64,000 bases of DNA from positions 62,001-126,000 of the IMG/VR virus record IMGVR_UViG_3300042562_001598. The stretch is one strand, 5' to 3'. Shown here one piece after another: positions 1,966-53,397 of the stretch. A model generated the notes under the pieces. It worked only from the letters and a program-made list of their open reading frames with translations. It searched no databases and was not told where the DNA came from. Made by a program: the position numbers and the translations under genes. Each line of letters starts with the position of its first letter. The stretch's first letter is position 1.

Positions 1966-4221
1966 ATGGCGTTTTCAGCTTCAACATGTGTAACAAATTT
2001 AGGTGGTATTGATATTAATTCTACCGTTAAAATACGAACCTATCCTGGTGAGATTCAAATAGGCGGTGATATTATATTATCGGCTATGACGGGAGTTAAT
2101 TGTCCTTATACAATTACTGGTATTCCAAACGGAACTACAGAATTACAAATATATGTACCCGGGACTAATGTTTGTGGGTATATAGATATTTCTGATAATG
2201 ATTTATGTAATACTTGTGATTTAGGGTTTGATTCTTTTACATCATCAACCATTGGAAATATAGTTGTTGGTAATTTAACAGGTAGTTGTCAAAACCCCAT
2301 AACGGATTATCGTATTCTTTGGTTTGGTCCTAGTGAGTCTATGGAGGTTGTCTCAACAAATGTTGCTCGTATATCGGGTAAAGGCTCTGCTTTCACTTAT
2401 AATTATCAACATCCTTTAACCGGAATTAGTTCTTTACCTATGGAACAAGGGTATTACAGACCTGTAATAGACAAAGTTAGAATCAATGGGGTTAATTTTT
2501 CATATACCGGAGGGACAGGTTATGTTCCGGCAGATTTGGAATGTTTTGATAGTTTACCTGTTTATGTTTCAGGTTATACTTGTGAAAATGGTAAGGAGAC
2601 GATAGGTGATTACACACATAGAGTTAATTTTACATCAACAGGAAGTGGTTTAAGTCCAACACCTCTTACATCAACTTTCATATTATCTGGTGGTACTACC
2701 AATTTTTTCGCTTGGAAATTTAAAGGAGAGATTATTCCTGACCAATTAAAATTAACATTTTTTGGAACTGAGTATGGTTTAGAACCAATAATTTTGGAAT
2801 GGTGGGAAGTTGGAAGTATTCCCAGTTTAAATACTGCGATAATTCAAAATACCAATACTTTTCCAAAATCTGCAAACACTATTAGTTATATTTCTAAAGT
2901 GACTACTTTAACTGGTCTAACGATAAATGATGGTGATAGGATATTGTTAGAAGTTATTCCTTCTAAAACAAATTTTAATACTAATTGGGATTTTTATTTT
3001 ACTTGTTTAGAAACATTTAATTGTGATACATGTTTAGATAGTTATGAGAATGAAAGTTATAAAATTGTTGGTAGTTCTATTACTGGAATTACAGGTACCT
3101 GTGGTAATATTGATATTAGTGTAACTATTAGTGGTTGTAATGAATCAACCCTTTTAAATTCTGATTTAATTAAATATTTTTATCAAAACCCCCCGGAATC
3201 TAATGTTATAAATAACCATTATTATGTTAGACCTTTTACTTTCCCTTTAAACAACTTTTCTGATTTAAGATTTAATGGGTACAGATGTTCACCTAGGGGT
3301 TTTGGGGGTATTATAAATTGTTCAAATTCAGGTAATTATATTTCTTTTGAAAAAACTGTTACCACAATACCACCAATTCAAGGGAATATTTATATGGAAT
3401 TTAGTGGAAGTTCTAGTTTAACAGATTTTAACTCTTTTTATAATGGTTATTTATATTGGAAAAATAGTCCAAGTTATTCTGGTTCTACTGATAATACAAA
3501 TTATGATTATTATCGTTATTGGATATTACCGATATCTACAGCAACAGGTGATACTTATTGTGGTGATAGTACTACTTATTATGATTATTATATTCATTAT
3601 CCGACAGCTGTTGTAACAACAGGATTAACAGGTAGTGGTTATTGGTTAAATATAACTATGCCAACAATTAGTGATGGTATTTTACCAAATAGTTGTGAGT
3701 TACAATGTGATTATTGGAGAATTGAAAGAGTAGGTATAATAAATACTTCCTCAACAGGTTCAACTAATAATCGTAAAATTTATAGTAATCGGGGTGCTAA
3801 ATATCAATCACCATTTCAAATATGGGATACTGGTCGGAGTAATAATCCTAGTACTAGTGGTGAGATTATTAGTTATTTACGGGTGAATAATAATATGTTA
3901 AATACAATACCTTCATCGGGTAGTAGTAATACTTTAATACATAGTTTGTCTGGTCAAACATGTGATTATAGTTCTTACGGGGTTTTTAATACCAATGGTA
4001 GAACACCACCGACAGATGACGGTTTATATTATTATGAAAAAAATTTATATGCGGTTAAATTACAATTAACAAACCCTTCGGATGTTAGAGATTTTGATAT
4101 TTATATGTCACCAATTAATAACTTTGTCTACTCTGGTTATCCCGGAAACCCAAACTATGAATTAGCCTATAGTTATTCAGGGGGAAGTGTTGTTTATTCA
4201 AGTTCAACTTACATAATTTAA
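1966..4221 (+). CDS. Large T/S/G/C-rich putative tail fibre/structural protein
   Basis: 751 aa, beta-rich low-charge composition with TG/SG repeats, within the structural cluster. Confidence 0.55.
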   Translation: MAFSASTCVTNLGGIDINSTVKIRTYPGEIQIGGDIILSAMTGVNCPYTITGIPNGTTELQIYVPGTNVCGYIDISDNDLCNTCDLGFDSFTSSTIGNIVVGNLTGSCQNPITDYRILWFGPSESMEVVSTNVARISGKGSAFTYNYQHPLTGISSLPMEQGYYRPVIDKVRINGVNFSYTGGTGYVPADLECFDSLPVYVSGYTCENGKETIGDYTHRVNFTSTGSGLSPTPLTSTFILSGGTTNFFAWKFKGEIIPDQLKLTFFGTEYGLEPIILEWWEVGSIPSLNTAIIQNTNTFPKSANTISYISKVTTLTGLTINDGDRILLEVIPSKTNFNTNWDFYFTCLETFNCDTCLDSYENESYKIVGSSITGITGTCGNIDISVTISGCNESTLLNSDLIKYFYQNPPESNVINNHYYVRPFTFPLNNFSDLRFNGYRCSPRGFGGIINCSNSGNYISFEKTVTTIPPIQGNIYMEFSGSSSLTDFNSFYNGYLYWKNSPSYSGSTDNTNYDYYRYWILPISTATGDTYCGDSTTYYDYYIHYPTAVVTTGLTGSGYWLNITMPTISDGILPNSCELQCDYWRIERVGIINTSSTGSTNNRKIYSNRGAKYQSPFQIWDTGRSNNPSTSGEIISYLRVNNNMLNTIPSSGSSNTLIHSLSGQTCDYSSYGVFNTNGRTPPTDDGLYYYEKNLYAVKLQLTNPSDVRDFDIYMSPINNFVYSGYPGNPNYELAYSYSGGSVVYSSSTYII

Positions 4222-5278: not shown

Positions 5279-7534
5279 ATGGGATTTATAATTAAAAATA
5301 CATCGGGGTTGATTAGTACACGATTAACGGATGCAGGTAGGTTGAAATTATCACAAGGAAATTTCAACATTTCTTATTTTCAGGTTGGTGATAGTGAGGT
5401 ATCTTACAATTCATTACCTAATACTTACAATCAATTTACTACTAATATATTAGAACCTAATTTCAATTCACAGAATTTAGCTGGTGTTCCGCAATCAAAT
5501 ATGCAGAATGTAAAATATCCTTATTATGTGGATGGGACTACAGGTAATACATACGGGATTCCAACGATGGCTTCAGCTCCAAGTTCTATTTACAATAGAG
5601 CTGCAATGAGAGGATTTTTTACTGGTGATACAACGGCAACAACAATTAATTGGAGTGCTTTAACTAGTAATGAATATGTTATTAATTCTAATTATATTGT
5701 TGAAATGTCAGGTTTAACTGGTGGAACAACAATTAAGGTTATAACTTCTGGTTGTAATTCAAATAGTGTTAGATTACCTTTAAGTGGTGATTTAATTACT
5801 ATATACTATAATGGACTTGGTAAAAGTAATTGTTATTGTAATCAGTCAAGTAGTGCTTGTACTATGTCAATGAATAGTTGTTATCCAATGATGACTTATA
5901 GAATTATTGATGTTTGTTTGGATGTATTAACATTGGATAGAAAAACACCTGATTTTAGTTATTTAAGTGGAACTTGTTATTACGCTAGAACTTTAGTTTA
6001 TCCACCAAATATGACATCATTATATGATAGTAGTACACCATCAGAACATTGGAGTGATAGTGTATTAAACTTTGAGTCTACTTGTTATGTTGATGAATTT
6101 GATGTTAAGGTTTGGAATATGAATATTCCGTGGTCTGAAAATCCAGCTGGGTTGATATCTACTCAAAACAAAGATTATACTAATTTTGGGTCTATAACTT
6201 ATTTGGGTACTAAAGAATACCTTGGTTATATGTCAAATAGTGGTCAAACAGATACTAGTTCTACTTATTATGTAAATTCATTTGGTGAGATTGTAACCGT
6301 TGAACCTAAAGACCAAAAAGCTATTGCAATTATACATTATACTAATCAGTCAATTGATTTATTTTATGGTGAAAAATTTGCGTTAGAACCTTATGATGCT
6401 AATACACCTGAAGAAAATACTGGTGAAGCAAGAAACTTTAAGTTACATTTACCTTGGTTGATGTGGCATAAAAATCCTGAATGTTGTTTGGGACAAACTT
6501 TTTGGGTTGACCCAGCTGGTTTTGATGACAAAAACTTATTTGAGGTTCAATATATTGAATCAACAAAAAATACGGATATGAATAAACCAGGTATTAGATA
6601 TTATCATTTATGGGATAAAAACGCTAATCCGGATGGATATCCAAATAGAGTTGGGAAAGTATTTCCTGACCAAAAAATCATTGTGATTGATGATGAAGAA
6701 ATAATTGCTGCGATGTCATATAAGTCAAATCGTAATTGGACTTTACCGGCACCTAAAGTTTCTTTACTCACACCAAATACTTGTGACTCAACAACAAATC
6801 AAAGTTCCACAGGTATATTAACGGATGATACCGAGTATTTGTATGTGACTTATAGATTAAGTAACTCAACAACCTTTACGGACTCATTACATTGTAATTA
6901 TTATTCAAAAATACAAGGTCCTAATAATCTGTGTTCTGGATTACCAAGTCAAAATGTTGGTGTAAGATTTGGGGGTGAGTTTAATTGTTTAAATCAAATT
7001 CCTGAAGGTTCATCGGTGTTACAAAATGGTTTTTATGCTGATAAATTTGAAATTATTTGTCAAAAAATGAATAGTGATGGTAGACCAGATTCGTCAGAAT
7101 GGAAAATACTTGATTTTACTGACCAAATTAGTGGTTCAAGTATAAATGATTTTATAACTATGAGTGGATTAACAGGTTCAACATTTGTAATAACACAAGA
7201 GGATTATACTAACGCCCCTTATTATGATTTAAGTGATGATATTATTTTACCAACGGGTTCAACAATGTCACTTAATTTTGGTGATGAATATTATTTTTAT
7301 GGGTCTATTGAGACGGATATTCAAGCAACGATTTATGAAATGAAATATAAGGTTAATTTAGGTCAATCTGAATTTCAAGCAACTTCAAATCCGACTTGGT
7401 CAAATGGTGAAACATCATATATTACTGAAGTTGGTCTTTACGATAAGGATTTTAATCTTATGATTATATCAAAGCTACAATCTCCTGTTTTACGACAGGG
7501 AATTCAACAGTTTTTAGTAAAATTTGATTTTTAA
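5279..7534 (+). CDS. Baseplate/tail-collar-fibre-like structural protein
   Basis: N-terminal RLTDAGRLKLSQG..ISYFQVGDSE and C-terminal YITEVGLYDKDFNLMIISKLQSPVLR resemble the two ends of the phage tail-collar fibre domain; TATTTAT upstream. Confidence 0.6.
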   Translation: MGFIIKNTSGLISTRLTDAGRLKLSQGNFNISYFQVGDSEVSYNSLPNTYNQFTTNILEPNFNSQNLAGVPQSNMQNVKYPYYVDGTTGNTYGIPTMASAPSSIYNRAAMRGFFTGDTTATTINWSALTSNEYVINSNYIVEMSGLTGGTTIKVITSGCNSNSVRLPLSGDLITIYYNGLGKSNCYCNQSSSACTMSMNSCYPMMTYRIIDVCLDVLTLDRKTPDFSYLSGTCYYARTLVYPPNMTSLYDSSTPSEHWSDSVLNFESTCYVDEFDVKVWNMNIPWSENPAGLISTQNKDYTNFGSITYLGTKEYLGYMSNSGQTDTSSTYYVNSFGEIVTVEPKDQKAIAIIHYTNQSIDLFYGEKFALEPYDANTPEENTGEARNFKLHLPWLMWHKNPECCLGQTFWVDPAGFDDKNLFEVQYIESTKNTDMNKPGIRYYHLWDKNANPDGYPNRVGKVFPDQKIIVIDDEEIIAAMSYKSNRNWTLPAPKVSLLTPNTCDSTTNQSSTGILTDDTEYLYVTYRLSNSTTFTDSLHCNYYSKIQGPNNLCSGLPSQNVGVRFGGEFNCLNQIPEGSSVLQNGFYADKFEIICQKMNSDGRPDSSEWKILDFTDQISGSSINDFITMSGLTGSTFVITQEDYTNAPYYDLSDDIILPTGSTMSLNFGDEYYFYGSIETDIQATIYEMKYKVNLGQSEFQATSNPTWSNGETSYITEVGLYDKDFNLMIISKLQSPVLRQGIQQFLVKFDF

Positions 7535-29067: not shown

Positions 29068-29244
29068 ATGGAAACATTAGAACAAATCAAAGTTTTGACT
29101 GAAGAATTATCAGTTAATGTTACTAAATTTTACAAAGGTAACGATAGTGCTGGAACTAGAGCTAGAAAAACTTCTCAAGAACTTAAAACTTTATTACAGA
29201 CATTAAGAACTGAAATTTTAGACAAAAGAAAAAAAATTGAGTAA
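29068..29244 (+). CDS. Histone H1-like (Hc1 family) small protein (not in ORF track)
   Basis: 58 aa METLEQIKVLTEELSVNVTKFYKGNDSAGTRARKTSQELKTLLQTLRTEILDKRKKIE; GNxSAGTRARK signature. Confidence 0.8.
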   Translation: METLEQIKVLTEELSVNVTKFYKGNDSAGTRARKTSQELKTLLQTLRTEILDKRKKIE

Positions 29245-30854: not shown

Positions 30855-31749
30855 ATAATTTAATAAATAGGTCACCACTATTAAAAAATCCTTTTGATTT
30901 AACTCTCAAAGGTTTTGAGGTGTCAAATTCTGAAGGTAGTTTAATTGAGATATTACCTTTTGGATGTGGTATGGTTAATGAAGGTTTATTTAAGTCTTCA
31001 AGATTAAGGAATGAGTTATAAACCAAATCATTACCGGATTTCTCAAAATCACTTTCAGGTTGTAAATTAACTTTAAGAACTAGATTACCGTACATTCCAT
31101 CATTAAAATTACCTTTACCTTGTAATTTAAGGAATTGTCCATTATCAATTCCGTGTGGTAATTTAATTGAAATAGTTTCAATGACATTTTTAGTTGTTTC
31201 ACCATGACAAGTATTACATACATTTTTATATGTAAATCCATTACCATAACAGGAATTACAAGCTTGTCTAACCATTTGGATAAACATACCAGTTCCCATC
31301 CTTTTTACTGTAAATCCTTGACCATTACAACCATTGCAATTTGTTCGTTCACCACCTTGACCATTACATGTATCACATTTATGTTTTCTTGAGAATGTGA
31401 TGGTTTTATCGTTACCATTGTATGACTCTAATGTTCCAACATGAACATCAACAATAGTGTCAGGAACAACCCTTTGTTGTTGTGTATGAAAATGATTACC
31501 AAACATTTCATCAAAGGGATTAAATCCTCCACCACCCATATTTGCGAATGGGTTTCTTCTTTGATTATCGTATTGATTTCGTTTATTTTCGTCACCTATC
31601 GTATCAAATGCTACAGAAATTTTCTTAAACATTTCCTCATCACCACCTTTATCGGGGTGATGTTGGATTGCTTTTTTCTTATACGCTTTTTTTATTTCTT
31701 CTTGGGTTGCGGTTTCTGAGACCTCAAGAGTTTCATAATAATTTTCCAC
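30832..31749 (-). CDS. dnaJ: DnaJ co-chaperone (J domain + Zn finger + C-terminal domain)
   Basis: YYETLEV...HHPDKGGD, G/F region, four CxxCxGxG-type repeats; GTG start. Confidence 0.92.
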   Translation of the reverse strand: MENYYETLEVSETATQEEIKKAYKKKAIQHHPDKGGDEEMFKKISVAFDTIGDENKRNQYDNQRRNPFANMGGGGFNPFDEMFGNHFHTQQQRVVPDTIVDVHVGTLESYNGNDKTITFSRKHKCDTCNGQGGERTNCNGCNGQGFTVKRMGTGMFIQMVRQACNSCYGNGFTYKNVCNTCHGETTKNVIETISIKLPHGIDNGQFLKLQGKGNFNDGMYGNLVLKVNLQPESDFEKSGNDLVYNSFLNLEDLNKPSLTIPHPKGNISIKLPSEFDTSKPLRVKSKGFFNSGDLFIKLYVKFTRK

Positions 31750-31760
31750 TGATGATGTTA

Positions 31761-31985
31761 TTAAAACAATGCGATTATATCCTTAAATAATTTTATTGAA
31801 CCATAGATAGCTGCGAATAAAATATAAGATGATAATACAATCATAGACCAATGGGTTGTACTTAAACCTTTTTTACAAGAGCTACAACCTTTTTCTTTTG
31901 TTGTACTAACTGATTCTGATACATTTATTGGGTCAATAATTTCAAAATTTTTGATATCAGAATCTGGGATTTCAATGATTTTCAT
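31761..31985 (-). CDS. Small protein with CxxC and C-terminal TM
   Basis: GCSSCKK and a hydrophobic C-terminal helix. Confidence 0.55.
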   Translation of the reverse strand: MKIIEIPDSDIKNFEIIDPINVSESVSTTKEKGCSSCKKGLSTTHWSMIVLSSYILFAAIYGSIKLFKDIIALF

Positions 31986-32136
31986 AATATTAATATTTTT
32001 TAGTTTAATACTTAAATATAGTAATTAATTAAAATAAATCCAACAATTGAGTGTTGATTTTTTTATTTTATGTTTAGTGAGTTTAAATATTGATATTTTT
32101 CTTAAAACCTTATATTTATAATAAAAACTAAATAAA

Positions 32137-33591
32137 ATGAATTTCATTAAATTATTATCTAATCTGATAGTTGAAGATTCTAAATTTGAGAATCTATATA
32201 ACAAATACGTTGAGGTTAAAGACAAAAAAAACCCAGAAGTTAAGAAAAAGGGATTACCTTTTGATATGTTTAAAAAATTAATATTTGCTGACCCAACAAC
32301 AAGAGTTCCCCAAGGTTTTGATGTTGACGGTGCTCAAGTAGCGGACATGGATTCTGTTAAAGTTGGTAAATATGTTCAATGGATTATCAATACTTTTGGT
32401 AAGTTACCAACAACTATTACTGATGTTGAACCTGGAACACCTGAATATAAAGAACAAGTTAAAGAATTGGTTAGATTATATTTGGAGGATTTGGACCACT
32501 TGAAAACTTTATTGGAGAAGTATGAAAGGTTTAAAGGTAGTTTACAAGACCCTACTAAAAAAGATATTAATAAAGTTAATTCTGTTGAAGAATTAATGAC
32601 TTTACCTATCGTTGTTTCAGACGAAGGTGATACGATAGAATTAGATTTATATCGTGGTAAAAAAGTTAAAAAAGTTAAAGGAGAAGATTCAACATCTCCA
32701 GCTCAAGATAAATTTAAATTCCCTGGTGCTGAAATATTAAGAGATAACGGTGAGTATACATTAATTAAAATTGCTGACAAAGGACAAATAGGTTCTGATG
32801 CGGCGTCTTATTTTGGTGGTTATGATGGTAAAGCACAGGCTGGTGAAACTAACTGGTGTACAGCTGCTAAAGACTCCGGTTACTCAAAAACTTATAGAAA
32901 CCAAGGTCCTTTATATATTTTCATTGCTAATGACCCTAAAGGTCAAGTTGGTGAAAAAACTGGATTACCTTCAGAAAGATACCAATTCCACTTTCCTAGT
33001 AACCAATTTAGAGATAGATTTCAAAACAGTGGAAATATTGATGTTGTTAAATTTATGAATGGTTCGTTTGCGGATTTTAAAGATTTATTAAAAACTGAAT
33101 TTTTACGAATTGGTGGAACTACTAGTGGTGGAGACGGTGGAAGACTTAGTGGTAGTAAAATAGAAATTAAATTCCCTGGGAATGTTTCATTATACGAACA
33201 AATATATGGTGTTGAAAAAGATTTACAAGGACAATTCAACGAGATAATTAATACATTGCCGGATGATATTGAATCATTGGTGATTAAAAACACTACAAGT
33301 ATGGATGTAGCTTTAGATGTTCCTGAATCTATTGGTAATTATAAAAATTTACAAACTTTAACTCTACTTAATTTGGTTAAAACATTACCTGAATCAATTG
33401 GTAATTTGACAGATTTACAATATTTGATTTTAACTGACAACCCTTCAATTGAGAAGATACCTGCAAGTGTTGCTAAATTACAGGATTTAGTTTTTATTAA
33501 CTTACAAAGAAGTAACCGTGGTGTAGAAATACCAGCTGAGGTTAAGGAGTTATTAGAGGATTCTTCAGATGGTTTTTACGCTATGAAGTAA
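32137..33591 (+). CDS. Leucine-rich-repeat protein with uncharacterised WCT-motif domain (late copy)
   Basis: VPESIGNYKNLQTL / LPESIGNLTDLQYL / IPASVAKLQDL LRRs; TATTTAT at 32113; leader MNFIKLLSNLIVE. Confidence 0.8.
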   Translation: MNFIKLLSNLIVEDSKFENLYNKYVEVKDKKNPEVKKKGLPFDMFKKLIFADPTTRVPQGFDVDGAQVADMDSVKVGKYVQWIINTFGKLPTTITDVEPGTPEYKEQVKELVRLYLEDLDHLKTLLEKYERFKGSLQDPTKKDINKVNSVEELMTLPIVVSDEGDTIELDLYRGKKVKKVKGEDSTSPAQDKFKFPGAEILRDNGEYTLIKIADKGQIGSDAASYFGGYDGKAQAGETNWCTAAKDSGYSKTYRNQGPLYIFIANDPKGQVGEKTGLPSERYQFHFPSNQFRDRFQNSGNIDVVKFMNGSFADFKDLLKTEFLRIGGTTSGGDGGRLSGSKIEIKFPGNVSLYEQIYGVEKDLQGQFNEIINTLPDDIESLVIKNTTSMDVALDVPESIGNYKNLQTLTLLNLVKTLPESIGNLTDLQYLILTDNPSIEKIPASVAKLQDLVFINLQRSNRGVEIPAEVKELLEDSSDGFYAMK

Positions 33592-33647
33592 AATACTTTG
33601 ATTTCATATTTTTTTTATCTATCTTTGATATTATAAATAAATTTGAG

Positions 33648-35036
33648 ATGAACACAACAACAAAAACCTTAAGTAGGTTTCAAATTTTATACGATAGATA
33701 TGTTAGAAAAGGTGGTATTGATACTGCCTTTTCTAGTTTATCAAAAACACATTTATCTTTTGATGTGTTAAAGTTATTGATATCTTACGACCCCACCACA
33801 AAAACCCCAAATGATTTTGATTACGCTAAAGCTTCCGTTGATGATATGACGGATGTTAAAGTTGGTCAATATACTAAATGGTTTATAAAACATTATTTGA
33901 ACCCGGAGATTACGGAATTAATTGAAATTAATCAGGGTATTGATTATCTTACTGAAGATGTTAATAGTGAGAGATATCAATTAGTTATTAAGGAATACCG
34001 TAGAAGATTTGAGGAAGATTTGATGGGTGTTAAAAACGATTTAGTTAATTACAGAAAATATAAATTTCACATTCCGGAAGACAAAAGAGACATTAACAAA
34101 CTCAATACTCATTTATTGAGTAAAGTTATTAATGATATCCCTAGTAATATTATTGAGAAGAAGAATAGGGAGACCTTAAAGAATGAAATACGATTGGTTC
34201 GTGAGGGTTTTTATCATCCTGGTGCGACAATTGAGATTCAGGGGTCTGAATATACTTTAATTAAGATTGAGGGCGATGGTGACAAACAAGCTGAAGCCGC
34301 TTCTTGGTATGGGGGTTATTACGATTTTATAAATGGTGAGAGTAAATGGTGTACTTCACCACCTGACTCTAATTTTTTCCGAACTTATATTAAGCAAGGA
34401 CCTCTTTATATTATATTAAAGAATAAAGATGAACTTAGTAAGAGAACTGGGTTACCTATTGAGAGATATCAATTTCATTTTCAAAGTAATCAATTTATGG
34501 ATAGACATAATCAACCAATACCGCTGGTTCAGTATTTTAATGGTCATCTAAAGGATTTTAAGGACTATTTTAAGAAAGATTTTACTAAAGCCTTAATGAG
34601 TGGTGACGGGAATAGAGTTGAGATTAATTACCCTGAAACATCATCAGGTAAGTTCGTCGCAATATATGGTTTTGATAATATATTTGATTCGTTACCGGAG
34701 GATATTAGTCATCTTATTATCAGTAATAAATCAAAAGAAAAAGTATCATTTAAAATACCTGAAACTATTAATAGATTTAAGAACCTAACCGCTTTATTAT
34801 TACAAAATATTGTTAGTGAATTACCTGAAAGTATCGGGGAATTAACTAAATTGAGATTTGTATCTTTATGTGGGAATAAGTCTTTGGAAGAAATACCAGA
34901 ATCTGTTGGAAATTTACCCGAATTACTTTTTATAAATCTTAAAGATTGTAATCCGAGACTAGTGATTCCTAAAAACATAACTGACAATATGTTATATGAA
35001 GGAAATGGTTATTATTGTAAAAAAAATATATTATGA
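33648..35036 (+). CDS. Leucine-rich-repeat protein, tandem paralogue (early copy)
   Basis: IPETINRFKNL / LPESIGELTKL / IPESVGNLPEL; same WCT, GPLYI and ERYQFHF motifs; TTTG-N19-TAtcTTTG at 33597-627. Confidence 0.8.
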   Translation: MNTTTKTLSRFQILYDRYVRKGGIDTAFSSLSKTHLSFDVLKLLISYDPTTKTPNDFDYAKASVDDMTDVKVGQYTKWFIKHYLNPEITELIEINQGIDYLTEDVNSERYQLVIKEYRRRFEEDLMGVKNDLVNYRKYKFHIPEDKRDINKLNTHLLSKVINDIPSNIIEKKNRETLKNEIRLVREGFYHPGATIEIQGSEYTLIKIEGDGDKQAEAASWYGGYYDFINGESKWCTSPPDSNFFRTYIKQGPLYIILKNKDELSKRTGLPIERYQFHFQSNQFMDRHNQPIPLVQYFNGHLKDFKDYFKKDFTKALMSGDGNRVEINYPETSSGKFVAIYGFDNIFDSLPEDISHLIISNKSKEKVSFKIPETINRFKNLTALLLQNIVSELPESIGELTKLRFVSLCGNKSLEEIPESVGNLPELLFINLKDCNPRLVIPKNITDNMLYEGNGYYCKKNIL

Positions 35037-35323
35037 AAAATGTAGAAGTAGAGTTATACCTCAATCAGTTTATTAAGTTTTTTGATAATAACCCTAACGA
35101 CCTAATGAATTTAATTGGGGATTTAGGTAAAGAAGAATTTTATCTTAAAGTTAAGGAACAATCATATTTGAATGTTGAGAATGGTGAGGAACCATCATTA
35201 ACCCAAAAACAACTTATTGCGATTGTTGTTAAGATGAAAAAACGAGATATTAATGATGATGAGGTTAAATTATTTGAGAAAATATTCAAGGATACAAAAT
35301 TTGGTCCATTATGTTTGAATTAG
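35033..35323 (+). CDS. Hypothetical protein
   Basis: 96-aa ORF ending CLN. Confidence 0.6.
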   Translation: MKNVEVELYLNQFIKFFDNNPNDLMNLIGDLGKEEFYLKVKEQSYLNVENGEEPSLTQKQLIAIVVKMKKRDINDDEVKLFEKIFKDTKFGPLCLN

Positions 35324-35377
35324 TTTTGTTTATTAATTAAAAAAAAATTACTTTTGTAAGGTTTAATACAATTTACG

Positions 35378-37105
35378 ATGGAAGAACTTTATAAATATAT
35401 AATTGAAACTTATCATGTTACAGAATATGATGATACAACTCCCGTCCAAAGGGAGATATCTGACGACCCATTTGAGGATAATGGTCGGTATTATGATATG
35501 GAAGGACTTGAGTATGTAATCAAAGGAAACTATACAACAAAAGAAAAATTTGAAGAAAACCTTAAAAACAAATTAGCTGTAGTTGAAATAAAAAGAAAAA
35601 GTGTTTACGTAACTAAAACTGAAGATAAAATTAGTTTTAAACTTTTCACATATAGTAGAAGACGACGACTAAATGGTCGGGGTTTTAAAAGTGATAATAG
35701 TGTTAGGTTTGTAACTTTTAATGTTAAGACTAATTCACTATATTCTGGACATATGACGAATTACACATCCAAAAAAAAGGTTAATAAAAGAATTCGTAGA
35801 AACAACTTTTGGGAAAGTCCTTTAAACTTGATAAAACATTTAATGAACACAATGTTTTATGGGAGTTTAAGTAATAAAAAACTTAAGGAAAAAATGACCG
35901 AAAAACACGAGGTTATCGGAATATCAATGAATATTTTTTTAAGTAATATCCCAGGTGTTGTTATTAACCCATCTTATAGTGATGATGAAAACTTATACAA
36001 AAGATATTTGGAATATTCAGGTATTAAGTATTCAAATAACTGGAAAGTGTTTATGGAGATTTTCCCCCAAGTTACAAAAAAAGATTTGGTAAAACACAAG
36101 TTAAAGTTTATTGATGCGTTTATGACTAAAAATGGTGTCAGTGGTGAAAAACTAAAAAGGGTTTTACATACGGTTAAAGAATGTAATATGGAGTCATTAC
36201 ATTATGCTTATCGTTTATTGGGGGAGAAATTTGTGAATTCCCAAAGTGATGACTTTATGAAACAGGTTATTGAGACCTCGGTGTTTAAATACTACTATAT
36301 GCCGGAGTTTGCATTTAAGAATGATAAAGAGAAAAGAAATGTTGTTGAGGTTATGAAGTTAGTTATGATGAAACATATAACATCTAACACTTTCAACGAC
36401 CATATAAATATGATAACCCAAATAAGATTATTTGAGGATTTTACTTGGAAGTCGAAAACTTATGATGAGTTTAATAATGAACATTATGATTTGACCAATA
36501 AGGTTAGTCATTATACTCAAGGGGATTTCACTAGAAAATATGATGAAAAATTTGTAAATACTATTGAGAAACCTATTGTGTTAGATTACATTTATTATCC
36601 AGTTGTATTAAAAACATCTATTGACTATAATTCGGAGTCGGTGACGCAATCAAATTGTGTTAAGACTTATATTAAAAGAGAGGAGTCAATAATCATTTCA
36701 CTTAGGAGAGATGAAATCACTGGTGAAAGAGTTACCATTGAATATATTGTAGGTCATAATGGTGAAAAAGTCTTTGACATTGTAAGAATCCAGACATTAG
36801 GTAGATTTAATCAAGGTATTGATGAAGTTTGGCATAATGTTGTGGCTAAATTAGATGATAGAATTAATGATTATTTATTACATAATGAGTTTACTTTACC
36901 GGTTATGAATGTTGTTGTAGGTGGTAGAGAATTTGATACTGAATGTGAGGTTACTGATAATATTAAAATGAAACATTATATGGACCAAAGTAATAGAACC
37001 GATTTTGGTTATCAACTAAAATGGGATAAAGATTTAAGTAGGTTAAAAGATAATGTAAATACTGATGACCAAGAAGAAACTCACGACTGGATTGATTTTT
37101 TTTAA
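35378..37105 (+). CDS. PcfJ-like domain protein
   Basis: ESVTQSNCVKTY...IISLRR...RVTIEY...IQTLGRFN; TTTG-N20-TActTTTG upstream. Confidence 0.7.
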   Translation: MEELYKYIIETYHVTEYDDTTPVQREISDDPFEDNGRYYDMEGLEYVIKGNYTTKEKFEENLKNKLAVVEIKRKSVYVTKTEDKISFKLFTYSRRRRLNGRGFKSDNSVRFVTFNVKTNSLYSGHMTNYTSKKKVNKRIRRNNFWESPLNLIKHLMNTMFYGSLSNKKLKEKMTEKHEVIGISMNIFLSNIPGVVINPSYSDDENLYKRYLEYSGIKYSNNWKVFMEIFPQVTKKDLVKHKLKFIDAFMTKNGVSGEKLKRVLHTVKECNMESLHYAYRLLGEKFVNSQSDDFMKQVIETSVFKYYYMPEFAFKNDKEKRNVVEVMKLVMMKHITSNTFNDHINMITQIRLFEDFTWKSKTYDEFNNEHYDLTNKVSHYTQGDFTRKYDEKFVNTIEKPIVLDYIYYPVVLKTSIDYNSESVTQSNCVKTYIKREESIIISLRRDEITGERVTIEYIVGHNGEKVFDIVRIQTLGRFNQGIDEVWHNVVAKLDDRINDYLLHNEFTLPVMNVVVGGREFDTECEVTDNIKMKHYMDQSNRTDFGYQLKWDKDLSRLKDNVNTDDQEETHDWIDFF

Positions 37106-37427: not shown

Positions 37428-37742
37428 ATGGAGATTACAACAGAAGAATTAAAAAGAAAAATTGAAAATGGTGAAAAATTGGTTATTGATTTTCACGCAG
37501 CATTTTGTGTACCTTGTAGACAAATGAAACCAATCTTTGAAAGAATTGCTACAGAATATCAAGAACAAAATTCAGATGTACAATTATACACTATGGATGT
37601 TGAAGCTAATATGGCGTTCGCAAAATCATTGGGTATTAGAAATATTCCTATGATTAAAACTTTTGCTAATGGTACTGAAACTTATTCTAGAGTGGGAACA
37701 CATACTGAAGAAGAAATTAAAAATGTTATTGAAACCGTATAA
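37428..37742 (+). CDS. Thioredoxin
   Basis: DFHAAFCVPCR, GIRNIP cis-Pro motif. Confidence 0.85.
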   Translation: MEITTEELKRKIENGEKLVIDFHAAFCVPCRQMKPIFERIATEYQEQNSDVQLYTMDVEANMAFAKSLGIRNIPMIKTFANGTETYSRVGTHTEEEIKNVIETV

Positions 37743-37744
37743 TT

Positions 37745-38029
37745 ATGGATAAATTATTAATTGTCTTTACGATGAAGGGTTGTCCTTATTGTGTTGAATT
37801 AAAAAATAAAATAAAGGAAAGTGATATTGATTTCGTTGAACGCGATATTGATAAACATAAGGATGAATATGATATGTTTGTTGAAATAACAGAAAACGAA
37901 TTTGTTCCAGCCTTTATGATTGTTGAAAGTCCTGACAAAGAACCAACTTCATTGTTATTTGCACCGGAAAGAGATTTTAATGAAATTGATGAAGGTTTGA
38001 CAATTATTAAAGAACATTTTAATAAATAA
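37745..38029 (+). CDS. Glutaredoxin/NrdH-like redoxin
   Basis: GCPYC, FVP. Confidence 0.85.
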   Translation: MDKLLIVFTMKGCPYCVELKNKIKESDIDFVERDIDKHKDEYDMFVEITENEFVPAFMIVESPDKEPTSLLFAPERDFNEIDEGLTIIKEHFNK

Positions 38030-47184: not shown

Positions 47185-47502
47185 ATGGGAAATATAATTA
47201 TCACAGAAAAACAATTAAACTTATTGGTTGATAAGTTTAAGAACAATATAAATGAAGAACACGAAGGTGGTTCTTACATGGCTAAAGAACAACTATACAC
47301 TATAGCGACTTTAGCTATGAAGATGTGGGAAAAAATGGAAGATGGTGACCAATTAGAGGATTGGCAAGAAACTAAAATCGCACAATCAGAACAATCAATA
47401 ATATCTGTTGTTAAACATTTTATGTATGGTGAAACTGAAACCAAAGATACTAATAGTGGTATGGATAGATTAGATTTTGGTGATATTATAATAGGTCAAT
47501 AA
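47185..47502 (+). CDS. Putative head-associated protein with leader
   Basis: MGNIIITEKQL...INEE; YMAKEQL...LEDWQETKIAQ. Confidence 0.55.
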   Translation: MGNIIITEKQLNLLVDKFKNNINEEHEGGSYMAKEQLYTIATLAMKMWEKMEDGDQLEDWQETKIAQSEQSIISVVKHFMYGETETKDTNSGMDRLDFGDIIIGQ

Positions 47503-49297: not shown

Positions 49298-50908
49298 ATG
49301 AATTTAATAAAATCAATAAAAGCTTTAATAACTGAAGCGTCAAAGAAGAAAATCCTAATGGATAAACTTGGGTTTAATGAAAACCAAGCGGAAATGTTAG
49401 ATAGTTTATGTGGACCCTTAGCTGTATGGATGGGTAATAAATTACTTAAGTTTTTTTCTGATTATCATGGGGGTATGACTCAAGAATTAAACCCTGAAGA
49501 ATTAAAAAAGACATCAATTAATTTGGTTAATCAAAACAATTTAGTTCGCAGACAACGAGAACAAATAGTATCCATTATGGATTATATTAGAGTTGGGTTA
49601 GACGGAAATGTTTCAACGATTAAAGATTTATTTTATGATGAGTTATATAACGAATCAAATCAGTGGCATCAATCTTTGGGAACCAAAGATGGTGATATTA
49701 ATTATAAAGAAGAACATCCTATTGTTGTTGATTTTAGAAATGAAGATGGTCTTGGGTTTTATTGGGTTGATACAGAAACTAATGATTGTTCGGAAGAATC
49801 CCGGAGAATGGGACATTGTGGTAGAACAGATAGAAGTAATAGCGTTTATTCTTTGAGAGAATTTAAGAAACTTAAAGATAAATATACGATTAACAAAAGT
49901 CACTTGACTGCGGCGATTGGTGATAGAGATGGTATATTATACCAATTAAAGGGTCCTCACAACTCAAAACCGAAAGAAGAATACCATAACTACATATTAC
50001 CATTGTTTTATGTTTTGGGGGGTGATGGTGGAGAAGCTGGATACTTAATTCAAGGGTTTGGTTCAGAATATCAAAGTCAAGAAGATTTCAAGCTTACTGA
50101 TTTACCTGAAGAGGTGCTAAAATCATTATATAGTAATAGACCTGAATTGTTTAACACAAGAAGTTTAAAGAACAAATTAGCAGAATTAGGTCTTATAGAA
50201 AAACCTGAGTACGATTATAATGTAACCATTGATATTGACCCAGGTCGTCTTTCATATTATATTGATGGTGATTATAAAGTGGGAAGTTATAAAAAGAAAA
50301 CACCTGCTGGTAATGATTATAGTGTTGATGTTTTTTTATTTGATAAAATAATGGGTGGTGATACCTGGGAATTTTGTGGTTCAGATTCTGATGATTGGTC
50401 TGGTGCTCTACAATATTATGTGAATAGTGAAAACGAAAAGCGAATTGAGGAAATGGTTAAGGAAATGGCTTCAAGTAATAATCCAGATTTTGATGAGGAT
50501 GAATTTAACGAATTAAGTCTTGATGAAAAAATTGAGGAATATGATGAAGATTACGATATTAGAAACGCTTTAAACAGGGCTTATGATGATGCTTGTTGTA
50601 GTGAATATACTGATTATTTGTATGATACATTAAGAGGTGCGGTTGAGGAGTATGGTAAGATTATTAGATTTGATGATGAACGAGTTATTTTTGAGGTTAA
50701 TATAGAAAGTTATATAAATGAACTTGATGATGAGATTTTTGACGAACATCTTGAAAACTGTAATGATGATTTAGCATGTGTTTTTGAGGAGATGATTGGT
50801 CAAGGTGATGTTGATAAACCTGAATATAGTACTGACGACCGGTGGTCTCCGGATATTGATTATGGAAACTATAATGAAATATTGAGTGACCGACTATCGG
50901 ATATATAA
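49298..50908 (+). CDS. PcfJ-like domain protein with leader and acidic C-terminus
   Basis: EESRRMGHCG, VYSLRE, SHLTAAI, YQLKGPHNSKP; leader MNLIKSIKALITEA; TATTTAT at 49275. Confidence 0.65.
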   Translation: MNLIKSIKALITEASKKKILMDKLGFNENQAEMLDSLCGPLAVWMGNKLLKFFSDYHGGMTQELNPEELKKTSINLVNQNNLVRRQREQIVSIMDYIRVGLDGNVSTIKDLFYDELYNESNQWHQSLGTKDGDINYKEEHPIVVDFRNEDGLGFYWVDTETNDCSEESRRMGHCGRTDRSNSVYSLREFKKLKDKYTINKSHLTAAIGDRDGILYQLKGPHNSKPKEEYHNYILPLFYVLGGDGGEAGYLIQGFGSEYQSQEDFKLTDLPEEVLKSLYSNRPELFNTRSLKNKLAELGLIEKPEYDYNVTIDIDPGRLSYYIDGDYKVGSYKKKTPAGNDYSVDVFLFDKIMGGDTWEFCGSDSDDWSGALQYYVNSENEKRIEEMVKEMASSNNPDFDEDEFNELSLDEKIEEYDEDYDIRNALNRAYDDACCSEYTDYLYDTLRGAVEEYGKIIRFDDERVIFEVNIESYINELDDEIFDEHLENCNDDLACVFEEMIGQGDVDKPEYSTDDRWSPDIDYGNYNEILSDRLSDI

Positions 50909-53004: not shown

Positions 53005-53397
53005 ATGAAAGTGATTATCACTGAAAGACAAAGAAAACTATTATCCGAAGACGAGGATAGAGATTTTTTAGTTAAGAAAAAAATTGCAAAAAAAGAATTA
53101 ACAAAACGCTTTGGTGATTTGATACCTTATGAGACCAAAGATATTCCTGATTACTTTTTTTATATTGATGAAAATAAAAATATTTATTTTGAGTGTAATA
53201 AAAAAAATGGTGAAGTCTGGGTAGATAATAAAACAATTAGGTCATTTTTAAAAGAAATTTTTTCATTTAATTACAAACAAATTCAACAGGTTATAAAAGA
53301 ATGGTTGGGAGAACATTACAAATTAGATGTGACAAAAACCATCAGGTCTCCCAATACTGTGCATCAATATGTTGCGAGAACATTACAAAATAAATAA
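53005..53397 (+). CDS. Hypothetical protein with MKVIITERQ leader (family with 46820, 9955)
   Basis: IAKKELTK(R/K)FGDLI...FYIDE...KEWL.EHY.L shared with 46820. Confidence 0.65.
   Translation: MKVIITERQRKLLSEDEDRDFLVKKKIAKKELTKRFGDLIPYETKDIPDYFFYIDENKNIYFECNKKNGEVWVDNKTIRSFLKEIFSFNYKQIQQVIKEWLGEHYKLDVTKTIRSPNTVHQYVARTLQNK

Follow-up and report, generated by a model that had tools for sequence, protein, structure and literature searches.

Proteins ejected from the phage capsid are the first phage products that host defences meet, and to our knowledge few of them are understood outside T4, P1, N4 and the phiKZ-like phages. Every internal head protein of T4 reaches the prohead core by way of an N-terminal capsid-targeting sequence, 10–20 residues long, that is removed by gp21, and Alt is cleaved at ITE-6 (PMC5694885); the T-even phages' internal proteins are diverse anti-defence proteins whose sole common feature is the targeting peptide (PMC3012670). 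Here we describe two adjacent genes in a 64,000-nucleotide stretch (hereafter the window; bases 62001–126000 of the 282,192-bp IMG/VR virus record IMGVR_UViG_3300042562_001598) of a freshwater jumbo phage, whose record has an estimated completeness of 96% and a G+C content of ~29%. Copy 1 (P0001; open reading frame 32137..33591, plus strand) encodes 484 residues and copy 2 (P0002; 33648..35036, plus strand) encodes 462 residues; both proteins end in leucine-rich repeats (LRRs), and copy 1 begins with a short leader that is missing from copy 2. We tentatively favour a joint reading of the pair, in which copy 1 may be a capsid-targeted effector delivered by the virion and copy 2 an early effector that acts in the cytoplasm.

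When copy 1 is set beside the T4 internal proteins IPI-III and Alt, the likeness lies in a leader of 13 residues, within the T4 range, that ends in a hydrophobic-x-Glu motif (LIVE, compared with ITE-6), in the gp21-type protease and gp23-type capsid protein that the phage encodes, and in unrelated candidate cargo proteins that share the leader; it extends to the expected role, here predicted, of a protein ejected with the DNA that would act on the host at once. The differences are that we found no similarity to any T4 internal protein beyond this motif, and that the candidate cargo here is a 470-residue, three-domain protein with LRRs. T4 is not known to have a counterpart to a leaderless paralogue behind a host-type promoter.

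Domain architecture of the two paralogues and their family

An earlier reading of this DNA (the original prediction) had described the genes as colinear paralogues that share a series of motifs, and our searches bore this out: P0001 and P0002 aligned over their full length with 38% identity (BLASTP E-value 3e-91), and both contain DPTT..P..FD, VKVG.Y..W, PGA.I..EYTLIKI, GE..WCT, TY..QGPLYI, TGLP.ERYQFHF.SNQF.DR and LPESIG. Most of these motifs are invariant columns in a 51-member family alignment, in which each copy keeps every family-invariant residue. Both copies are under purifying selection (omega 0.17–0.26), and a whole-protein search together with a profile search with the central domain identified just these two copies in the genome.

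An AlphaFold2 model of P0001, built from the family alignment (mean predicted local distance difference test (pLDDT) of 85), showed four parts, all encoded on the plus strand: the leader (residues 1–13, MNFIKLLSNLIVE, 32137..32175), a candidate capsid-targeting propeptide with pLDDT <50; a helical N-terminal (N) domain (residues 14–175, 32176..32661) that holds the DPTT and VKVG.Y..W motifs; an alpha/beta domain, here WCT (residues 186–330, 32692..33126; 186–327 in the model); and a C-terminal LRR domain (residues 339–484, 33151..33588) of 4 or 5 (L)PESIG-type repeats. Copy 2 has the same three domains (WCT at 34200–34589 and the repeats at 34599–35033, plus strand), without the leader.

The C-terminal LPESIG-type LRRs that had been reported proved to be real, though short. 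Residues 370–484 were modelled as an alternating strand/helix solenoid (pLDDT 87–97), and a Foldseek search of the PDB with the whole protein returned LRR structures only (E-value 5e-4, probability 1.0). Matches to Pfam LRR_14 scored 34.1 bits for copy 1 and 24.4 bits for copy 2, both under the 40-bit cut-off; a regular expression found three clean repeats in copy 1 and two in copy 2, flanked by degenerate ones with LPESIG, IPASV and IPAEV. The best Foldseek matches were to typical LRR proteins of the type of Leptospira LIC12759 and human SHOC2, with 25–33% identity over ~100–150 columns, and both share with our proteins repeats of 23–24 residues of the form LxxLxLxxN..LP.SIG. Unlike these proteins, the two copies have just 4 or 5 repeats, carried on a virus-only module, with Pfam scores under the curated cut-off.

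The WCT domain has the invariant residues W240, C241, T242, Y253, P258, Y260, N265, G276, L277, P278, R281, Q283, H285, F286 and Q290. The invariant Cys (C241) and His (H285) invite the reading, raised by the original prediction, that this domain may be enzymatic; within the core family, the Asp that follows H285 varies. Structure prediction followed by Foldseek lent this reading no support from a known fold or family: residues 14–330, modelled separately (pLDDT 86), gave no PDB match below an E-value of 0.35, the top matches of a VIA-wide search, GNAT and hot-dog folds, reached a Z-score of 4.8, which is within noise, and PDB sequences searched with a profile yielded nothing below an E-value of 0.1. 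A papain-like, NlpC/P60 or transglutaminase-like Cys-His hydrolase was considered and rejected, as no such fold appeared in the Foldseek PDB or VIA-wide results.

One tentative link is to the PcfJ-like proteins (PF14284). A language-model feature search placed a PcfJ cluster near WCT (0.89), three of 66 distant members of the WCT superfamily gave sub-threshold PF14284 matches (best E-value 3.3e-6; the match overlaps WCT in P0332, the one examined), and a Foldseek search of BFVD found phage proteins named PcfJ-like at a marginal E-value of 5.6e-4. A Pfam search gave no PF14284 match for P0001 or P0002 at E-values up to 1, and a literature search on PcfJ-like proteins or PF14284 found none. We also considered whether WCT is related to a PcfJ-like family encoded nearby, that of the 575-residue protein described below, and rejected this: profile-profile comparison with hhalign gave a probability of 0.09%, and a hidden Markov model of the PcfJ-like region of that neighbour found no WCT protein.

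The family to which both copies belong is virus-only, very abundant and without an assigned function. A word-based search found full-length relatives of 455–490 residues in >1838 clusters (90% identity), with metagenomic contigs reaching 464 kb, an ESM Atlas cluster held 2026 members, all viral, and a profile of the WCT domain matched 1495 cluster representatives (50% identity clusters); one family member lies in a genome bin labelled Bacteroidota. In a cultured-phage database neither the locus as DNA nor P0001 as protein had a match, and the cultured phages PA5oct, CcrBL9 and SCTP-2 were reached by a distant superfamily member only. The original prediction that LRR proteins are uncommon in phages thus describes cultured phages well and fails for uncultured ones, with >1800 metagenomic clusters; a literature search on LRR proteins in jumbo-phage virions found nothing relevant.

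Beyond the LRR family, the core GT.WCTA..Y..Y..GPLYI...KYQFHF.S.QFMD recurs in proteins of 400–560 residues, and it is repeated 2 to 5 times in giant proteins of 900–1850 residues. The N domain accompanies the WCT domain in this wider superfamily, and the C-terminal partners vary: several LRR types, BspA-type LRR, ankyrin, WG repeats, LRV and GNAT. Foldseek matches in BFVD also placed the N and WCT module in metagenomic bins that bear the name Marseillevirus LCMAC201/202, one of the matches being an ankyrin-repeat protein; either giant eukaryotic viruses possess the module too or phage contigs have been placed in these bins.

Leaders, promoters and ancestry of the two copies

The leader that ends in LIVE, noted in copy 1 by the original prediction, is present, and copy 2 starts MNTTTKTL with no in-frame alternative start upstream. 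In the family the leader has the 13-residue consensus M(K/R)(I/F)T..LS.LI(T/V)E, found in ~95% of core members (220 of 237, and 241 of 254 in a second count), and a looser motif (two hydrophobic residues, any residue, Glu) occurs in 64% of the distant WCT-superfamily members, compared with 17–19% of the other proteins of this phage. The leaderless members are P0002 and its close orthologues P0150 (96% identity) and P0151 (80% identity) only, which form the sole leaderless lineage in our tree; other apparently leaderless members look like miscalled starts. Between orthologues the leader had a dN (nonsynonymous divergence) of 0 and a dS (synonymous divergence) of 0.55 over its 13 codons, and since the amino acids are identical while the synonymous sites have diverged, the constraint is on the peptide and not on the RNA.

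The same type of leader starts two proteins unrelated to P0001, MNLIKSIKALITE (window 49298..50908, plus strand) and MKLYNTFKSLIVE (G000 263527..263907, minus strand), which are candidates for further capsid-targeted cargo. The MNLIKSIKALITE protein has 536 residues and TATTTAT at -23, and the MKLYNTFKSLIVE protein has 126 residues; a comparison of the 536-residue protein with P0001 showed that it is not a paralogue. As a separate observation, dozens of small paralogues start MK(I/V)IITE(N/R)Q.. or MK..(I/L)TE.E..IL. (e.g., window 53005..53397 and 47185..47502, and G000 160894–167231), many of them with TATTTAT at -21 to -23, and they hint at another and larger class of N-terminal peptides conserved in this phage.

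The phage encodes the machinery that such a leader would use. A T4-like head module outside the window (G000:C1:225933–233507) includes a portal gene (phrog_213), a gp21-type prohead protease (Peptidase_S77, PF03420; 85.6 bits, G000:229325–229756, in the gene at G000:229163–229897) and a gp23-type major capsid protein (PF07068; 217 bits), with TATTTAT 5' of the portal and protease genes; by this module the phage can be assigned to the distant T4-like jumbo myoviruses. By analogy with T4, the leader fits a capsid-targeting propeptide that ends in I/L-x-E, a pattern that suits LIVE-13 and LITE-13 alike, and cleavage would be expected after Glu13.

The promoters of the two copies differ in the same sense as their N-termini. 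Copy 1 is preceded by a phage-type element, aTATTTATaataaaa (32112..32127, plus strand), whose TATTTAT core (32113–32119), already recognized in the original prediction, lies 24 nt before the ATG. Across the genome 83 of 396 upstream regions contain TATTTAT, compared with 17 expected (4.8-fold); the motif is sharply concentrated at -21 to -24 and has the extended form aTATTTATwAwwAAA, and tail sheath, portal and prohead protease are among the products of the genes that it precedes. Genes with the loose N-terminal motif carried a TATTTAT promoter in 14 of 41 cases, compared with 50 of the 355 others (odds ratio 3.2, p 0.003), and none of the 41 had a host-type promoter.

Copy 2 follows TTTG-N19-TATCTTTG (33597..33627, plus strand; TTTG at 33597–33600 and TATCTTTG at 33620–33627, ending 21 nt before the ATG), a match to TTTG (-33) / TAnnTTTG (-7), which we take to be the Bacteroidota sigma-A promoter consensus. 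The original prediction had described this copy as leaderless and preceded by a host promoter motif, and both features were confirmed in the sequence. Full matches to TTTG-N17-21-TAnnTTTG numbered 42 genome-wide, compared with ~20 in Markov simulations, and 14 of the 42 end 5–33 nt 5' of a same-strand start codon, compared with 1.3 expected (10-fold). Most of these start-proximal matches lie 16–28 nt from the start codon, a range that includes the 21 nt of copy 2, and the genes that we sampled behind host-type promoters were non-structural (methyltransferase-like, phosphoesterase and peptidase-like).

This contrast between a leader with a phage promoter and no leader with a host-type promoter, which the original prediction had proposed for the pair, is kept in orthologues (75–80% protein identity) and in a 44%-identity relative. 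All leader-bearing copies that we examined have TATTTAT at -23 to -25, among them the single copy of L003 (44% identity) and P0152, the nearest leader-bearing relative of copy 2, where it is at about -23; the TATCTTTG box is at -27/-28 in every copy-2 orthologue (L005, L006 and L007).

The paralogy of the copies does not stem from a simple or recent tandem duplication, as their description as tandem paralogues might imply: our tree and pairwise identities rule this out, with the copies in different clades. Copy 2 has 50% identity to P0152 and P0104, which are single copies with a leader from other phages, compared with 38% to copy 1, and its lineage (support 1.0) groups with these two (support 0.78), in another clade than the copy-1 lineage (support 1.0), which groups with the P0010–P0066 clade (support 0.89). 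In the related phages L003 and L032 a single leader-bearing copy lies directly 5' of a conserved 96-residue gene, followed by a gene of 560–590 residues, one of ~100 residues, thioredoxin and glutaredoxin. The counterpart of the 96-residue gene here (35033..35323, plus strand), whose start overlaps the copy 2 stop, marks the usual genomic position of the family and is directly 3' of a family member in L003, L005, L006 and L032. Copy 2 sits at the usual single-copy position, directly upstream of this gene, and copy 1 lies upstream of copy 2, an arrangement kept in three independent contigs (L005, L006 and L007). A related lake contig, L008 (6001–9030), has two leader-bearing copies in tandem before the contig end, 76% and 96% identical to copy 1 and each preceded by TATTTAT, and in some strains the locus may accordingly hold three copies.

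Evidence from a virion came by way of a distant family member, P0362, which matched EST35_0205 (QCG76086.1) of the Pseudomonas jumbo phage PA5oct, a protein annotated as 'structural protein, ESI-MS/MS'; in PA5oct, 93 gene products have been tied to virions by mass spectrometry (PMC7318152). EST35_0205 aligned directly by BLASTP across the N and WCT domains with P0001 (E-value 4.5e-10) and P0002 (E-value 5e-12), and was matched by Foldseek in BFVD (E-value 3.2e-7). Like copy 1 it is of similar length (482 residues), comes from a jumbo myovirus, has a hydrophobic-x-Glu N-terminus (MKLFEVFTLYE) and has homologous N and WCT domains; it differs in having no detected repeats in its C-terminal half, in its identity of ~27% and in the phylum of its host. 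No function has been assigned to EST35_0205 either.

Proposed virion delivery and early expression, and alternative readings

In the joint reading that we tentatively favour, a two-domain module, consisting of the helical N domain and the Cys/His-bearing WCT domain, would be joined to a swappable repeat domain, and the short LRR would most likely bind a host protein; the combination of conserved N and WCT domains with swappable repeats suggests a common activity with different targets. In their repeat domains the two copies are just 41% identical, and they would accordingly be expected to bind different partners. Copy 1 would be the ancestral form, expressed from the phage-type promoter together with virion genes. 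Its leader would bring the protein into the prohead core, where the gp21-type protease would cut after Glu13, and mature copy 1 would be ejected with the DNA into the next host. Copy 2, from a different clade, would have shed the leader and gained a host sigma-A-type promoter in place of the phage one, and because of both changes it would be synthesized inside the cell as soon as infection begins and would stay out of the virion. Leader loss and promoter change fall on the same branch, and of our internal evidence this speaks most strongly for a packaging role of the leader and for a site of action of the remaining protein inside the cell.

Several observations weigh against this reading. The original prediction had called copy 1 late, and its promoter is indeed of the phage's own type; TATTTAT is also found 5' of a DnaB-like helicase gene, which rules out a strictly late class, and we regard the motif as marking a promoter class of the phage itself that may be middle or late. 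A scan of 31700–35450 found no intrinsic terminator, and hence none between the copies, so that copy 2 may also be read through, late, from the copy 1 promoter. The locus was found in 24 lake-water DNA metagenome runs, with 24 studies represented, and there were no RNA runs among the matches. The cleavage motif is short, and ~19% of the phage's proteins fit its loose version by chance; the 'structural' label of EST35_0205 gives neither a virion location nor N-terminal processing; and the WCT domain matched no known enzyme fold. Finally, some relatives carry BspA-type LRR, CBM_5_12 or WG repeats, which are of an extracellular type and would fit an adhesin too.

Of the alternatives, we consider it unlikely that neither copy is packaged and that the two are an intracellular pair differing in transcription class only, the N-terminus of copy 1 serving folding, partner binding or translation initiation. 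Such a pair would sit well with a TATTTAT motif that is not confined to virion genes, with a loose N-terminal motif that is common among the phage's proteins, and with the many small, non-structural-looking paralogue families that start MKIIITE... It is harder to square with a leader that is constrained at the protein level and lies outside the folded domain, that is common to unrelated proteins, and whose loss coincides exactly with the change of promoter class, or with the presence of a remote homologue in virions.

Quite unlikely, in our judgement, is that both copies are virion parts outside the head (tail, baseplate or surface adhesin), with the N and WCT domains as an anchor, repeats that bind the host surface, and an N-terminal motif that is simply a structural helix. 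Receptor-binding proteins usually join a conserved N-terminal module to a C-terminal binding domain that varies, the extracellular-type repeats of some relatives would suit such a reading, and so would the PA5oct homologue, for which no place in the virion is given. Yet residues 1–13 fall outside the confident fold and end in the I/L-x-E that is cut by prohead-internal gp21-type proteases, ankyrin and GNAT partners point to an intracellular role, and an adhesin sits poorly with a copy that has no leader and follows a host-type promoter.

That copy 2 is a redundant paralogue in the course of being lost, and its promoter match a chance A+T-rich string, is highly improbable: although chance would account for ~20 of the 42 full promoter matches at 29% G+C, copy 2 is under purifying selection (omega 0.17–0.20) and keeps all family-invariant residues, its TATCTTTG box is at the same distance in three orthologous loci, and its start distance is typical of the close matches that are 10-fold over-represented.

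Beyond the joint reading of copy 1 as virion-delivered and copy 2 as early and cytoplasmic, a broader one, which we regard as rather doubtful, can be drawn from the family as a whole. The N and WCT domains might be a virus-only effector chassis, delivered from the capsid by means of a T4-like peptide and retargeted by C-terminal swaps (LRR, ankyrin, WG, LRV), whose job is split at this locus between a copy preloaded in the virion and a copy transcribed by the unmodified host polymerase, so that a host factor would be countered without a gap from injection on. On this doubtful reading the chassis would range over jumbo myoviruses whose hosts include at least Bacteroidota, Pseudomonas, Caulobacter and Salicola, as well as thousands of metagenomic phages.

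Neighbouring genes and significance of the pair

Two genes after copy 2 lies a conserved gene of 575 residues (35378..37105, plus strand) that accompanies the LRR gene in all related loci examined, and two overlapping Bacteroidota-type promoter matches (35300–35356) are just 5' of it. A six-frame search of the genome gave a weak PcfJ (PF14284) match within this gene (36566–36739, 17.5 bits, under the 25 bits taken as threshold), the sole match in the genome, and the PcfJ-like region surrounds an invariant QSNCVKTY...SLR...RVQSLGRFN core. Further downstream, an adjacent pair of thioredoxin-like and glutaredoxin-like genes (37428..38029, plus strand; Pfam families recorded on the orthologues) is conserved downstream of the LRR locus in related loci. 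On the other side, divergent from and upstream of copy 1, is a gene for a full-length phage DnaJ (30832..31749, minus strand) that has a J domain, a CxxCxGxG zinc-finger region and a C-terminal domain, and its position is kept in all related loci. A 58-residue gene (29068..29244, plus strand) has orthologues in related loci that carry Pfam Hc1 (PF07432, histone H1-like), and the phage may thus encode a small nucleoid-type protein.

Elsewhere in the genome, outside the window, arrays of ~60 tiny genes of 50–90 residues that start MKTK..LGKSV.. occupy G000:C1:134200–137400 (plus strand) and 148200–159700 (minus strand), with TTCAGTG repeats every 12 nt in the upstream or overlapping DNA. Within the window, the two 751-residue open reading frames at 1966..4221 and 5279..7534 were considered as paralogues, and no such relationship was detectable.

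The pair is a natural experiment, in that leader loss coincides with a switch from a phage-type to a host-type promoter at one locus, a coincidence that would be expected if the sole job of the leader is packaging and the remainder of the protein acts in the cytoplasm. If the joint reading of virion delivery for copy 1 and early expression for copy 2 is true, the leader would be a usable sequence marker of capsid-delivered cargo in uncultured T4-like jumbo phages; the LRRs and other repeat domains of this family would then point to host proteins that phages must neutralise.

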